Position numbers and translations under genes: made by a program. From Selaginella moellendorffii (lineage: Eukaryota > Plantae > Lycopodiophyta): a stretch of 64,000 nucleotides of DNA. The DNA is taken from NCBI RefSeq assembly GCF_000143415.4, contig NW_003314268.1, forward strand, positions 1,938,494 through 2,002,493, given 5' to 3'. Below, in pieces: positions 1-43,549 of this stretch (position 1 is its first letter; each line of letters starts with the position of its first letter). The notes beneath the pieces are model-generated. The model saw only the letters and a program-made list of their open reading frames with translations, was not told the DNA's origin and made no database searches.

Positions 1-489
1 GCGAAGTTTGCATACGTGGGAACATGGTGTTCAAGGGGATACTTGAACAATCCAGACTCTGGGGACTTGGCAGTTTGGCATCCCAATGGATACATCAAGA
101 TCAAGGATCGAGCCAAGGATATTATCATTTCTGGAGGGGAGAACATTAGCAGCCTGGAAGTGGAGAGCATCTTGTACAGGTAAAAGGAGAGTTTTTCCTT
201 CTTTGTTTCTTGTTAAAGTTTGCTTCTTTTTCATCCAGGCATCCAGCAGTGTTGGAAGCTGCTGTGGTGGCGCAGCCAGATGAGCAGTGGTCCATGTGCG
301 TTTGTGTCCCTCAAGCACGGCGTGAGAAGCAACAAGGAGGAGATACTCTTGTTGTATCGACAGCATTTACCGAAGTTCATGGTGCCAAAGAGCATCGTCA
401 TTCTCACAGCCTTGGACAAAACTGCGACTGGCAAGATCCAAAAACAGGTGCTGTGCAGCAAAGCAAGAGCTCTTGGCAGTGTCAAGTAA
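1..489 (+). pseudogene. Acyl-activating enzyme (AMP-binding) C-terminal fragment, frameshifted
   Basis: Reads [41 protein letters not shown] | intron 180-238 | HPAVLEAAVVAQPDEQW. A frameshift near 290 leads to PCAFV...KTATGKIQK. Confidence 0.8.
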
Positions 490-559
490 ATCAGCAAGCT
501 CTACAAGCCAACTATTGAACTTGTAAAGCTTGAAATCGTTCATGGCCTGGAAAATCCCC

Positions 560-889
560 AATCTAGCCTGGCAATTTTAAATCGGTCAGCTACTGTCCGT
601 CCGTTGTAATGTACTGGAATGAAAAATAAATAAGTAACATGCAAGAACCAAGAACGCAATTCATCTACCTCAAACAGTAGCTTTGTCTTATCAGCTGTCA
701 CTCTTGCATATCCAAATGCCGACCTTCGAATCAAGCTCCATGAACTAAACTGTCGACAAAAAAAATAGAACAGGTAGAATATCAATACCATATAAAGAGC
801 TTGAATATAGGAAACAAAGCTGCAAGCTTACATTATGAGGGAAGTCATCCAAGGTGAATTCAGCCATGCCAACCACGGTGTGAACTGGA
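560..889 (-). pseudogene. Purple acid phosphatase (nucleotide pyrophosphatase/phosphodiesterase type), last exons, decayed
   Basis: Exons read PVHTVVGMAEFTLDDFPHN | FSSWSLIRRSAFGYARVTADKTKLLFE | a frameshifted final exon ...VADRFKIAR. This matches the recalled C-terminus of plant NPP/PPD-type PAPs. The 5' side runs into an N gap. Confidence 0.65.
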
Positions 890-1449
890 NNNNNNNNNNN
901 NNNNNNNNNNNNNNNNNNNNNNNNNNNNNNNNNNNNNNNNNNNNNNNNNNNNNNNNNNNNNNNNNNNNNNNNNNNNNNNNNNNNNNNNNNNNNNNNNNNN
1001 NNNNNNNNNNNNNNNNNNNNNNNNNNNNNNNNNNNNNNNNNNNNNNNNNNNNNNNNNNNNNNNNNNNNNNNNNNNNNNNNNNNNNNNNNNNNNNNNNNNN
1101 NNNNNNNNNNNNNNNNNNNNNNNNNNNNNNNNNNNNNNNNNNNNNNNNNNNNNNNNNNNNNNNNNNNNNNNNNNNNNNNNNNNNNNNNNNNNNNNNNNNN
1201 NNNNNNNNNNNNNNNNNNNNNNNNNNNNNNNNNNNNNNNNNNNNNNNNNNNNNNNNNNNNNNNNNNNNNNNNNNNNNNNNNNNNNNNNNNNNNNNNNNNN
1301 NNNNNNNNNNNNNNNNNNNNNNNNNNNNNNNNNNNNNNNNNNNNNNNNNNNNNNNNNNNNNNNNNNNNNNNNNNNNNNNNNNNNNNNNNNNNNNNNNNNN
1401 NNNNNNNNNNNNNNNNNNNNNNNNNNNNNNNNNNNNNNNNNNNNNNNNN

Positions 1450-1660
1450 CATGGAGCCGTGGAGCTGTGGCTGTCCCGAGGAGAAGTACAGGGACGAAAA
1501 TTTCTTTGTTCTCTCTTGGTTACAGCCTCGAGCACCTGGCACAAACAGGAACTTTAAGCCTCGAAAGAGAATAGCAAAAAGCAAGAGAGTGAAAAACCTT
1601 GATTCTAGTCGTGGTTCCAGCCTCAAGAACCTGGAACAAATAGGGGCTTGAGAGTCTCGA
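1450..1660 (-). pseudogene. Kelch-repeat gene fragment (paralogous to 31550-31760)
   Basis: Contains the SPRDSHSSTA motif. The nucleotide sequence aligns by eye with 31550-31760 (ccgtggagctgtggctgtcc; gaaaaccttgattctagtc...ggttccagcctc...aacctggaacaaa). Confidence 0.65.
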
Positions 1661-1796
1661 AAAAAGACTGTCATTTTTCCGGCGCATGGCCATTGACAAC
1701 GGTTTCCTGAGCTTTTCAATCGGTAGCAGCTTCAGATCTTCACGTACAGCTGACTGTAGCTCTGAGGTGCTCTGCAATGAAGACCGCATCAAACTC

Positions 1797-1846
1797 ACAC
1801 ACACACAGAGGCACAGAGAGAGAGAGAGAGAGAGAGAGAGAGAGAG
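1797..1846. repeat. (CA)n/(GA)n compound microsatellite
   Basis: Seen directly. Confidence 0.9.
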
Positions 1847-1889
1847 TACCTTCCCACAAGCGATGATCAACGCTCTCTCCTCGTGCTCA

Positions 1890-40471: not shown

Positions 40472-40680
40472 GAGATATAGAGAGAGAGAGAGAGAGATAT
40501 ATATATATATATATATATATATATATATATATATATATAGTATATATGTATATATATATATATATATATATATATATATATATATATATATATATATATA
40601 TATATATATATATATATATATATATATATAGATATATAGATATATAGATGTGTGTGTGTGTGTGTGTGATACATACATAC
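40472..40680. repeat. (GA)(TA)n(TG) microsatellite next to an assembly gap
   Basis: Seen directly. Confidence 0.95.
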
Positions 40681-41439
40681 AAAAGGCATGGTGTCAATGA
40701 GTGCCTTGGCCTAGCCAAACAGCCCTATCCTGCATGCCAAGCAATTGTGATCCTACACATAGTTCAGGAAAGAGCTACTGAAAGAACATCACAAAGAAAA
40801 AGCTCAAGAGGGAGCTACTAACCATGTCCACATGAAGAGGTGTCTCGGTGTGGAGCCAGGCACCCAAGGTCACGCCATGTCTGAAAAACTGTCGGTATTA
40901 GTGTTCATGCTAATGCTACCACCCTGGCCATCAGCACATTATATAGAGATGTCTTTCCAGCACCCTATCATGTTGATTAATAACATAAGTAAGAAGAATA
41001 AAAAATTGCTTGATTTACCTCCAATCCCAGAAGTCGTACCTGACTTAGACACGCTCTTCGAAGATGGCACAATACTCTAGATCTAGCTACTCTTGTGTAG
41101 ATGATACAACAGGTTGTAGGGGTAAGGCATTGTCCTCCTTGGATAGATGACGCAATGTCTTCTGCACCAGCCATGCAACGGGAAATGCCAGGCATGTAGC
41201 TCAGAATTGCAAACCAGTTTTGCTGCACTACCTATGCTGTCACCTCTGGCAAAACTTTCCACTGGCAAGTCAAAGTGTGAGTCTCCAAGGCCAGAGCAAG
41301 ACTGCAAAACACAACATTTCATGGCTACTCAATCCTCAGTTATATTACCTGGTAGAGTTTCCTCCAAGGATCTCCTTGCAACTAAAGCAGTCCTTGGGGT
41401 CCACAATGCCCTTCATTGCATTCATGCTGAGCTGCCAAT

Positions 41440-42340
41440 GGCTCCATAGGCAGTAGCTCAAAGCCACATGATGTGTGCATGCCAAAAGAGAGTTCACATA
41501 TGTGAATCTATAGCCTCGCTTGAGAGGACACTGCGTGACATATGCCGGGCCATTGAACCAGGGATTTCTAAATTGCCAGATTCCATGCCTGTGACTTAGA
41601 TCACAGAATATTTTGGAACTTTTGAGACTTCTCATCACCAATGGATTGACATCTTGTCAGTGTTTGGTACTGTGATCAGAAGCCTATCACCATTGTTGGC
41701 ATAGATAGTTGGTCCTGGGAGCTTGCCATTGACAGTGATAATGTTCTTTGTTCTTCCCAGCCTACTCACCATGATCTTACGACCTAGGTGGTGGCAATTT
41801 GATGAGCATATTAAGCAAACTGACCTGGAAGTCATAGACTTTGGTTGTTTCATTCTGAGCAGCCACCAAATCGAAGCTCCAGGAAGTGAGGAAAGAGAAG
41901 ATCACAACTGCGAGGAAAACACTCTGAGATCACGCTTGTCACTCCTTGTCCATGCCTTGCAGGATGTCGATCTTGTGCTGCAAAGGTGCCAGGATCTGCA
42001 AGCTCCTGAAGAATCTAGTCGCATAGCTTGTGTCATTGAAGAATGGCTGGATCAGAGTCTCAGGCATCACAAATGCAGAGGATTTCATGTCTCAGGTGAT
42101 GTACTCAAGCACGGCAGTGGTGGTGGTGGTGTAGGGGACTTGCTGCACCAGCATGTATAGCACCATGGACATGAAGTATCACACATGTGGTCCACGGTGA
42201 TGATGATGTTGGTGGTCTACCTAGGACTGAGGAGGATGGTGTCCGTAGTGTAGGGCTTGGTGTACTTGTCCATAGCTCCATGTGGAAGAGGTGGGAGGAG
42301 GTATCTCTTGCTAGTGATGGCATTCAGGGTGTAAACTTTT
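41440..42340 (-). pseudogene. Laccase/multicopper oxidase fragments in scrambled order
   Basis: N-terminal part: TKVYDFQ | VSRLGRTKNIITVNGKLPGPTI..SIHW | HGIWQ..GPAYVTQCP..WHAHIMWL. Central part: YTKPYTTDTILL..TTTAVLEY..FNDTSYATRF, lying upstream on the same strand. Confidence 0.8.
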
Positions 42341-42399
42341 CTGAGAGAACAAGAAGAATGGTGATATCGAGACACACACACACAGAGCAGCTCGCAATC

Positions 42400-42613
42400 T
42401 GCCCGATCACCCTAAAATATTTCACTTAATTTTGGAGCGTTATTAAAATCAAAATTGAAGCATTGCCACTCTTTTGGCATGTGATCTATGCCATCTATTT
42501 GAAGTTTTTGAATTTCAGCCATTAGATTATAAGTATATTCACAAATAATATTCTAAAAATGGAATAAAACCAGATGCCATATGGCAATAACACTTTTAAA
42601 TAAGAGGGTATAA
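42400..42613 (-). mobile_element. Helitron 5' module (degenerate copy of 14140-14355)
   Basis: Collinear ~210 bp similarity. Confidence 0.65.
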
Positions 42614-42639
42614 TTGTCATATGCAAACAACACTTTTAA

Positions 42640-43549
42640 ATAATGTAATCCATTATTTATATTTGAACTTGTCATTTGGAGCTCATCTTCCACATATTTT
42701 AGCATTTTAAATGCCTTTGCATATGGATTTATGTCTCACAATAAAGCATCTAATTCATTCATCAATCCTGTGTCACATTTACTATTATATTTTCTTTTCA
42801 TTCTTCTGCAGCTTTTAGCGTTGATGAAATGATTAGCAATGGACCATATTATTTCAAAATTCATAGACAAGTATACCATTCAATTGGCAGTTTTCATCCT
42901 ATGCAAGGTCATGATGCAAGATATTCTCAGCTTTATATTTTAGACACACTATTATAATTTCGAATTAATTCTTTAAAATTTCCTTGTTGGACTGTTCTAT
43001 CTAATAATTTATGAATCATTTCAAGGAATTCCAATTTTTTTTCTATAAACACACATCCATCATGACAACATTGTGATTGTGTTTCAGAAGCAAAAAGAAA
43101 AGCTTTACAATAGTTACAATGTTTATCCATGAAACCAATATAATCNNNNNNNNNNNNNNNNNNNNNNNNNNNNNNNNNNNNNNNNNNNNNNNNNNNNNNN
43201 NNNNNNNNNNNNNNNNNNNNNNNNNNNNNNNNNNNNNNNNNNNNNTTACCGTCTTTGTTGTTTTGCAAGAATCCTAAATGTTTAGTATTTTCCATGCTTT
43301 CTGATCCATTTCTAGGATTTCCTTCATAATACGTAGGGTAATAAATTCAACAATGTTTCTAGAAGCATTTTCTATGGGTATCAATCTTGGAATTGTTGGG
43401 GGTTCTTCAATGAAACCAGGTTTTGTCACACTTTCATCCATGCTTTTATTCATATATAGAGATGAATTCAAACTTGCTAAACTTCCATTTATCATACAGC
43501 CTTCATGTAAAATTAGATCACATGTTTTCCTCTTTCTTTTGCCACCCAT
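42640..43549 (-). mobile_element. Helitron RepHel transposase N-terminal remnant with internal micro-inversion
   Basis: Minus strand: IGFMDKHCNYCKAFLFASE..CCHDG..FKELIRNYNS. Plus strand ~42820-42948: GPYYFKIHRQVYHSIGSFHP..YSQLYILDT. Minus strand below 42810: LMNELDALL*DINPYAKAFKML. Confidence 0.85.

Follow-up and report, generated by a model that had tools for sequence, protein, structure and literature searches.

Helitrons are known from maize and other species both for the capture of gene fragments and for standing in head-to-tail pairs. Non-autonomous maize Helitrons that carry gene fragments were reportedly described by Morgante in 2005, Lai in 2005, Yang and Bennetzen in 2009 and Du in 2009. 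Here we describe a locus of this kind in the lycophyte Selaginella moellendorffii, on contig NW_003314268.1, within a stretch of 64,000 nucleotides (positions 1,938,494 to 2,002,493 of the forward strand; this whole stretch is called the window, and positions are counted from its first letter). The part of the window from 1 to 43.6 kb is most probably a graveyard of non-autonomous canonical Helitrons, stacked and loaded with dead genomic cargo, a reading to which we give a probability of roughly 0.85.

Like the maize Helitrons, the elements at this locus have TC...hairpin-CTAG ends with neither target-site duplication (TSD) nor inverted repeats; the pieces that they carry come from several genes, are truncated, contain introns and lie in one or the other orientation, and the elements are multicopy, some being transcribed. 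They differ from those of maize in residing in the compact genome of a lycophyte and in being packed head to tail, one within the 5′ end of another; at least one block of cargo resembles a native segment of two genes, and no sense chimeric mRNA was seen across a cargo junction. Pack-MULEs, from rice and other grasses, are alike in being DNA transposons that carry and amplify pieces of host genes, but they have long terminal inverted repeats (TIRs) and TSDs of 9-10 bp. A literature search outside the genome paper returned no description of Helitron cargo in S. moellendorffii. The locus is a well-resolved example of a known phenomenon.

The AT-rich part of the window occupies positions 1-44 kb (GC 18-44%) and is interrupted by eight assembly gaps; from about 44 kb onward GC is 41-66% and long intact open reading frames (ORFs) appear. 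Because composition and ORFs change at about 44 kb, the finding concerns a repeat island adjoining normal gene space.

Elements, termini and junctions

The following elements were read on the minus strand, where a headless element is one whose leader lacks its first three letters. The lengths of H1 and H2 are uncertain, since gaps fall inside both.

26087..28845, minus: Helitron H1, complete, AT-rich, with no gene piece found and two gaps; 5′ end TCCAATATATTT after A, 3′ end hairpin-CTAG
20409..26086, minus: Helitron H2, complete, non-autonomous (TC...hairpin-CTAG), with the gap 22512-22766; PGI and DUF2358 scraps inside, antisense to H2
14362..20408, minus: body of Helitron H3, with a headless 5′ end at 20408; carries PEPC and unnamed gene-derived pieces
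14355->5526, minus: element X, with an intact leader and a canonical 3′ end
5525->2044, minus: body of element Y, with a headless leader and a canonical 3′ end
2043 downward, minus: body of element Z, with a headless leader

The 3′ ends share a signature, in which a hairpin (CCCAGC-NNN-GCTGGG) is followed by 7 nt and then by GCTA plus G, T or A. When the whole window was scanned for CCAGC-N3-GCTGG-N7-GCTA with at most two mismatches, nine matches were obtained against 0.22 expected, and nine was reached in 0 of the 100 shuffles used as a control. One of these matches is a palindromic echo of 7411, and a decayed copy at 3446 completes the nine ends, which lie on the minus strand at 2044, 5526, 6607, 7410, 20409 and 26087 and on the plus strand at 3446, 12212 and 38150. 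All are left of 43.5 kb, and a scan of 44-64 kb for the same pattern gave no match. The nine hairpin-plus-CTRR termini that the original prediction had listed from the sequence alone are therefore present, but only four (2044, 5526, 20409 and 26087) are canonical, with a hairpin of 6-7 bp, 6-7 nt and CTAG followed by T. The others end in CTAA (6607) or CTAT (7410, 12212, 38150 and 3446) and are all internal to larger units; X contains the ends at 7410 and 6607 and, at 7824, a 3′ module that has no hairpin. At three canonical ends the hairpin folds better than most shuffles (z of -1.5 to -2.1). A generic hairpin-plus-CTRR scan was set aside, as only the four canonical ends among its 13 matches share the motif and the remainder, all those in 44-64 kb included, look like chance. 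The 3′ modules are as follows.

2044..2559, minus: 3′ module of element Y, with hairpin and canonical CTAG at 2044
3341..3446, plus: inverted, decayed 3′ module copy ending in CTAT, attached to copy 1 of a 1.7-kb repeat unit
5526..5625, minus: 3′ end of element X, with hairpin and canonical CTAG at 5526
6607..7123, minus: internal 3′ module with a CTAA end (self-BLAST and terminus scan)
7410..7434, minus: internal 3′ hairpin with a CTAT end (terminus scan)
7824..8328, minus: 3′ module copy without hairpin (self-BLAST)
12188..12212, plus: inverted 3′ hairpin with a CTAT end, between the FGAMS piece and copy 2 of the repeat unit

Each of the four canonical CTAG ends directly abuts a T and a recurring 5′ leader, which bears out the recurring 5′ modules of the original prediction and places one right behind every canonical CTAG. 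The leader at 26086 reads TCCTTCTATATTTAAAAGAGCAAGGG (intact 5′ end TCCTTCTATATTT), that at 20408 is the same minus its first letters, and those at 5525 and 2043 read TACTCATATATTTAAAC. The 5′ end at 28845 reads TCCAATATATTT with TCA in front, the one at 14355 reads TCATACTCCC with TCATCA in front, and the one at about 42615 reads TT and abuts a RepHel remnant. The leaders at 14355, 42615, 5525 and 2043 form one family, about 220 bp long. For a 19-nt leader core, 0.06 matches are expected and three were obtained, the two exact ones lying at the junctions; a looser scan for the AT-rich leader core was dropped, being too noisy in AT-rich DNA. The intact 5′ ends (26086, 28845 and 14355) begin with TC and are preceded by A, and three other 5′ ends (20408, 5525 and 2043) are without exactly their first three letters. 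Leaders and the short stubs in front of them are listed here.

1900..2043, minus: headless leader of element Z, starting TACTCATATATTT, without its first TCA, directly after CTAG
5434..5525, minus: headless leader of element Y, starting TACTCATATATTT, behind the CTAG of X
14135..14355, minus: intact leader of element X, starting TCATACTCCC (leader comparison)
14356..14361, minus: two TCA stubs, which may be the severed first letters of Y and Z
28846..28848, minus: one TCA stub, which may be the severed first letters of H3
42395..42615, minus: leader of a laccase-carrying element, abutting and truncating the RepHel remnant

There are three stubs and three headless leaders. Joining the stub at 28846-28848 to the headless end at 20408 gives back a 5′ end of 18 nt, exactly as long as that of H2, with two substitutions. 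The two stubs at 14356-14361 have their counterparts downstream in exactly two headless leaders belonging to the same family (5525 and 2043), and both of these leaders stand behind a canonical CTAG.

Public contigs were compared with the gap-free stretch 10300-16290, using contigs of a 210-Mb DNA-like run and of RNA-like runs. One contig of 228 nt (run X1) is 98% identical to 14221-14352 (2 differences) and then continues with the reverse complement of the hairpin-CTAG; therefore, another copy has an element inserted exactly at TCA/TAC (the slash marks the point of insertion), a site that is empty in the window. In the window junctions and in this paralogous contig, the insertion target is always A/T and nothing is duplicated. 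A self-BLAST of the window found no inverted similarity between 5′ leaders and 3′ modules, and the sole inverted matches among the termini are 3′ modules in opposite orientation.

The only protein trace of the transposon itself lies at the right edge of the island.

42650..43145, minus: RepHel N-terminal remnant (about residues 86-250), with an inverted piece at about 42787-42954

In an exhaustive HMMER search, a 70-aa piece of this remnant (43145->42936, minus) matched 17 proteins at E<=1e-3, among which P0007 (520 aa) has Helitron_like_N at 376-519. Residues 86-152 of P0007 align to that piece (pairwise E=9e-15), residues 147-204 align to 42754-42954 on the plus strand (E=3e-6), and the NPY motif, which comes next in P0007, returns to the minus strand at about 42735. 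The piece on the opposite strand, of 170-200 bp, reflects a micro-inversion in place or, alternatively, a misassembly beside the gap 43146-43245. Pfam was blank on the RepHel pieces and a protein atlas gave weak Helitron leads only. The RepHel remnant of the original prediction is thus real and homologous to a Helitron_like_N protein, but it comprises no more than some 165 residues of the N-terminus and stops at about 42650, where the leader of the laccase-carrying element truncates it.

In summary, the identification as Helitrons is supported by the hairpin-CTAG ends followed by T, the TC 5′ ends after A, the lack of TIRs and TSDs, the RepHel remnant, the high copy number described below and the X1 paralogous copy. 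The Helitron nest of about 43 kb that the original prediction had proposed is borne out by termini, junctions, 5′ leaders and multicopy state.

Gene fragments, donors and transcripts

The pieces of genes in the island are listed from left to right.

1..515, plus: 3′ part of an acyl-activating enzyme (AAE), cut by the window start; AMP-binding_C at 150-515 (PF13193, E=8e-5, just under cut-off)
543..827, minus: C-terminal scrap of a purple acid phosphatase (PAP), convergent with AAE; Metallophos_C, E=1.6e-4, just under cut-off
1450..1731, minus: Kelch fragment, copy A; 1514-1673 is 83-90% identical to 31669-31807 (self-BLAST)
4157-4483, 13076-13333 and 39100-39366, plus: peroxidase fragments, three copies (Pfam)
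10195..11223, plus: C-terminal ~45% of an ALDH, with introns 10749-10830 and 10938-11002 kept; Aldedh at 10481-11172 (Pfam, donor mRNA contigs)
11250..11864, minus: SDR-type 3′ part, with introns 11463-11525, 11569-11628 and 11714-11783 (spliced RNA contigs)
11921..12112, minus: single-exon scrap of an FGAM synthase (FGAMS); FGAR-AT at 11897-12175 (Pfam)
14965..15222, minus: PEP carboxylase (PEPC) fragment (Pfam PEPcase, profile positions 393-437 of 919)
15397..16041, no strand assigned: gene-derived pieces with no family named, ~87% identical to part of a 4.8-kb RNA contig (Pfam blank)
20892-21044, plus: PGI scrap, inside H2 (Pfam)
25757-25948, plus: DUF2358 scrap, inside H2 (Pfam)
29250..29656, minus: protein kinase fragment; Pkinase at 29507-29656 (Pfam below cut-off, translation)
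29697..30150, minus: C-terminal part of an amidohydrolase, earlier labelled LAF3; Amidohydro match at 29697-29915 (Amidohydro_3/1 below cut-offs, translation)
30560..31807, minus: Kelch fragment, copy B, large and multi-exon; Pfam Kelch at 31210-31805 (Pfam and translation)
36597..36957, minus: PPR-protein fragment (PPR_2/PPR, weak)
41000..41930, minus: N-terminal third of a laccase; Cu-oxidase_3 at 41348-41901 (Pfam)

The claim of fragments from at least 14 host genes stands for 13 of the 14 families named, which Pfam matches, all partially relative to the profiles and several below Pfam's own cut-off. The SDR piece, on which Pfam was blank, gave only a weak PDB match (E=0.013), but it has spliced donor RNA; it also contains YxxxK, which we take to be the catalytic SDR motif. 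A majority of fragments on the minus strand had also been claimed, and nine families do lie there; the plus strand holds AAE, peroxidase, ALDH, PGI and DUF2358, the last contrary to the earlier assignment. The gene-derived pieces at 15397-16041 had been absent from the earlier gene list; the strands are opposite at one of their joints, and Pfam was blank on the ORFs of 15.3-16.6 kb.

For three of the families, RNA-like contigs give a view of the donors. ALDH is matched by contigs of 561 and 1508 nt from two runs over 10479-10748, 10831-10937 and 11003-11223, with about 5% differences; these skip 10749-10830 and 10938-11002 at GT..AG, whereas the window copy retains both introns. At every diagnostic site the contigs carry the letter that the window does not, and they have a G after 10646, where the window copy has a 1-bp deletion and hence a frameshift; that copy is also truncated at about 10195. 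Because of the non-window letters and this G, an expressed ALDH donor exists elsewhere. Contigs about 95% identical to the SDR piece skip its three minus-strand introns and continue into unlike sequence beyond 11864, and a 3482-nt contig matches FGAMS at 11921-12081 only (7 differences in 161 nt). Since that contig matches nothing else here, the FGAMS piece is a single internal exon and the SDR/FGAMS boundary is a true chimeric joint; the original prediction had noted the direct abutment of the two pieces, and the contigs diverge at the edges of the fragments. The donor mRNA contigs of all three genes are about 95% identical to the fragments and extend past the edges of the pieces, and the RNA over ALDH, SDR and FGAMS is that of the donors, not of the window copy. 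The search for donors thus found expressed transcripts for these three families. The capture of genomic, intron-containing pieces, also part of the original prediction, is direct for ALDH and SDR, where introns are kept that the donor mRNAs skip.

ALDH (plus) and SDR (minus) are 3′ halves that converge, with about 30 bp between their transcript ends, and they probably form one captured two-gene segment. Capture events would accordingly be fewer than genes, because these two probably arrived as one segment.

The cargo is highly repeated. On the 6 kb compared, 2,885 contigs of the 210-Mb DNA-like run were placed, only 481 of them at least 99% alike, with up to 15-60 variant contigs at single sites. 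Summed contig depth, which is not a copy number and is used only to show that segments are highly repeated, was about 500 at 15.1-16.1 kb; it reached 5-8 thousand on ALDH, 11-21 thousand on SDR/FGAMS and 54 thousand on the leader, and the stretch 16.1-16.3 kb had 118 thousand. Leaders and 3′ modules also recur within the window with differing interiors.

One transcript belongs to this locus. It is seen in RNA-like contigs that show 0-2 differences and extend over 12684-13436, 13510-13790 and 13839-14174; they are spliced on the minus strand, as the introns 13437-13509 and 13791-13838 read CT..AC, which is GT..AG on that strand. This RNA spans the homology boundary at 13946, runs antisense to the peroxidase scrap, lies near the leader and has no notable ORF. 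By these contig matches, X gives rise from its 5′ part to a spliced transcript in the sense direction of the element. Chimeric spliced transcripts had been thought possible, and the mapping of RNA to chimeric junctions had been suggested as a check; a spliced minus-strand RNA across 13946 was found, but no RNA contig of the window copy crosses the SDR/FGAMS joint. RNA-like contigs were also absent over 14300-15299.

The peroxidase scraps belong to a 1.7-kb unit that self-BLAST finds three times (3343-5143, 12181-13946 and 38045-39614, 85-89% identity).

3447..5143, plus: repeat unit copy 1, with the peroxidase N-terminal fragment 4157-4483; contains the gap 4668-4801
12213..13946, plus: repeat unit copy 2, with the peroxidase fragment 13076-13333
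38045..39614, plus: inverted 3′ module (CTAT at 38150) and repeat unit copy 3, with the peroxidase fragment 39100-39366

Each of the three CTAT copies on the plus strand is joined to this unit in inverted orientation. In X and Y, it sits 200-300 bp behind the minus-strand leader, and because that leader lies to its right and the transcript is on the minus strand, the unit is read as the interior of X and Y. The alternative, that it is a plus-strand Helitron starting after CTAT, is less parsimonious.

Two further features stand apart from the Helitrons. A retrotransposon that the original prediction had not listed lies inside H3; gag, integrase, the chromodomain and the end of RNase H remain in it, and protease and reverse transcriptase are missing.

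16694..20076, plus: Ty3/gypsy chromovirus, internally deleted, with 113-bp long terminal repeats (TG..CA, 93% identical) and TSD TGCAG

Further right, where the DNA is GC-rich, 52312-53958 (minus) encodes an intact PPR protein of 548 aa that has an E motif, and an ORF with a LEA_2 domain lies at 48990-49823; gene space starts about 1-3 kb past the Helitron island.

Proposed formation of the stacks and alternative explanations

From the order of stubs, leaders and ends, we infer two stacks on the minus strand, one formed by a stub, H1, H2 and the H3 body (28848->14362) and the other by two stubs, X, the Y body and the Z body (14361->about 500). A few related Helitron families, mostly on the minus strand, would have accumulated by repeated rolling-circle insertion into the starts of resident Helitrons. 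Each newcomer would land at the A/T of TCA/T, three letters within the resident 5′ end, so that a TCA stub would remain on the upstream side and the rest of the resident leader, now headless, would directly follow the CTAG of the newcomer. The cargo would have been copied from the genomic DNA of expressed host genes, truncated, with introns kept and in either orientation; some pieces would have been fused by chimeric joints (SDR/FGAMS) and some would be native two-gene segments (ALDH plus SDR). Terminators that decayed to CTAT or CTAA inside the units may point to a gain of cargo by terminator bypass or by fusion of neighbours.

Taken one step further, the stubs may be an insertion ledger, with one entry per landing at TCA/T, and self-targeting together with terminator decay may yield composites that gain their cargo by fusion or bypass and not by direct capture from the host. 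We hold this extension tentatively, at a little under even odds, and the bookkeeping of stubs itself is a reading of the sequence pattern.

Two comparisons within the window touch on fusion. The block M1-microsatellite-Kelch occurs twice on the minus strand, and its copies (2545-1815 and 31902-31840) differ by a 3′ module, a junction and the next leader: these lie between M1 and Kelch in one copy (3062->1514) and are missing from the other (32374->31669). As a filled and an empty site, Kelch copies A and B do not give a clean insertion, and a deletion or fusion in copy B fits better; judged from the aligned blocks, the difference looks like a fusion of two adjacent Helitrons via deletion of their internal termini. 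The modules M1 and M2 are contiguous at 32374/32377 (...ATAAA/TTTTT) and are separated by about 6 kb of Helitron material at 3062...9079. This pair was also rejected as a filled and an empty site, since its left edge does lie after A but the inserted block has no Helitron end at its start and, on the right, its edge is lost in the gap 8933-9078.

Several observations weigh against the interpretation as stacked Helitrons with dead cargo. Five of the nine 3′ ends are non-canonical, and 3′ ends are undefined for H3, for Z and for the elements between 28.8 and 43 kb; the CTAA ahead of the stubs (14362 and 28849) was tried as a 3′ end and rejected for having no hairpin, and seven assembly gaps may hide further termini. 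The window holds no Rep or helicase catalytic domain, and no true empty site in non-Helitron DNA is available. Donor and copy-number support is limited, eight families (PEPC, PGI, DUF2358, kinase, amidohydrolase, PPR, laccase and PAP) being without it, and the RNA status of the runs termed RNA is the guess of a tool only. At the window edge, AAE and perhaps PAP may be resident genes and not cargo.

This last point leads to the best-surviving alternative, in which many fragments are resident genes shredded in place by insertions of Helitrons and LTR retrotransposons and by deletions. AAE leaves the window at its edge and converges on PAP, an arrangement that neighbouring genes have in this compact genome, and the eight families just named are compatible with such an origin. 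However, ALDH, SDR, FGAMS, the peroxidase unit, the leader and the PEPC region are multicopy and separate expressed donors exist, PGI and DUF2358 lie within H2, both ends of which are intact, and FGAMS is one internal exon with unrelated sequence on both sides. We therefore consider in-place shredding unlikely as a general account of the fragments, and capture by Helitrons remains the preferred one.

The pattern could also be inflated by assembly artefacts, that is, by repeats collapsed or mis-joined at the eight gaps, in which case the stack order would be unreal. The gaps are the following, and no claim made here depends on reading frames across them.

4668-4801, 134 N: assembly gap inside copy 1 of the 1.7-kb repeat unit
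890-1449, 8933-9078, 22512-22766, 26189-26528, 28542-28641, 39840-40471 and 43146-43245: the other seven gaps, unbridged

The 297 nt at 4802-5098 are 100% identical to 13597-13893, the rest of both repeat copies being about 85% alike, and the identical stretch begins exactly at the edge of the gap 4668-4801, which suggests gene conversion or a collapse or mis-assignment of reads. The inversion of 170-200 bp in the RepHel remnant likewise lies beside a gap. Against this, the junctions at 2044, 5526, 14352-14361, 20409, 26087 and 28845 are within contiguous sequence, and a 2,618-nt public contig confirms 11526-14143 with 2 differences. The flanks of the gap 4668-4801 are colinear with repeat copy 2 (self-BLAST), and continuity across it is supported because the spacing there in copy 2 is exactly the 134 bp of the gap. 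An origin of the stacks in the assembly is improbable, more so than in-place shredding.

Least probable of all, and by our estimate hardly credible, are carriers of the TIR type (Pack-MULE or CACTA) with the hairpin module as part of a terminal inverted repeat: the 3′ module does occur in both orientations, with 2045-2140 and 3353-3446 as an inverted pair 1.3 kb apart, but six of the nine ends run in the same direction without an inverted partner, the canonical ends stand in head-to-tail junctions of CTAG and T-leader, the only transposase trace is RepHel-like, and the TSDs or TIR partners that the original prediction had named as signs of a MULE or CACTA origin were looked for in the window and found neither around the 2045/3446 pair, which has no TSD, nor at the other ends, which are unpaired.

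Implications

Read as a graveyard of Helitrons, the locus indicates that the capture of gene fragments by these elements works on a large scale in the small genome of a lycophyte, which is separated from the grasses by about 400 million years, and it offers boundaries, donors and an insertion order that are readable at the base-pair level. For annotation, the at least 14 "gene" matches found here would be dead transposon cargo, which is not to be counted as genes. As to mechanism, the locus supports self-targeting at TCA/T. The bookkeeping of stubs is its most interesting aspect: if it is true, the order of arrival within a stack would be recoverable from the stub count.

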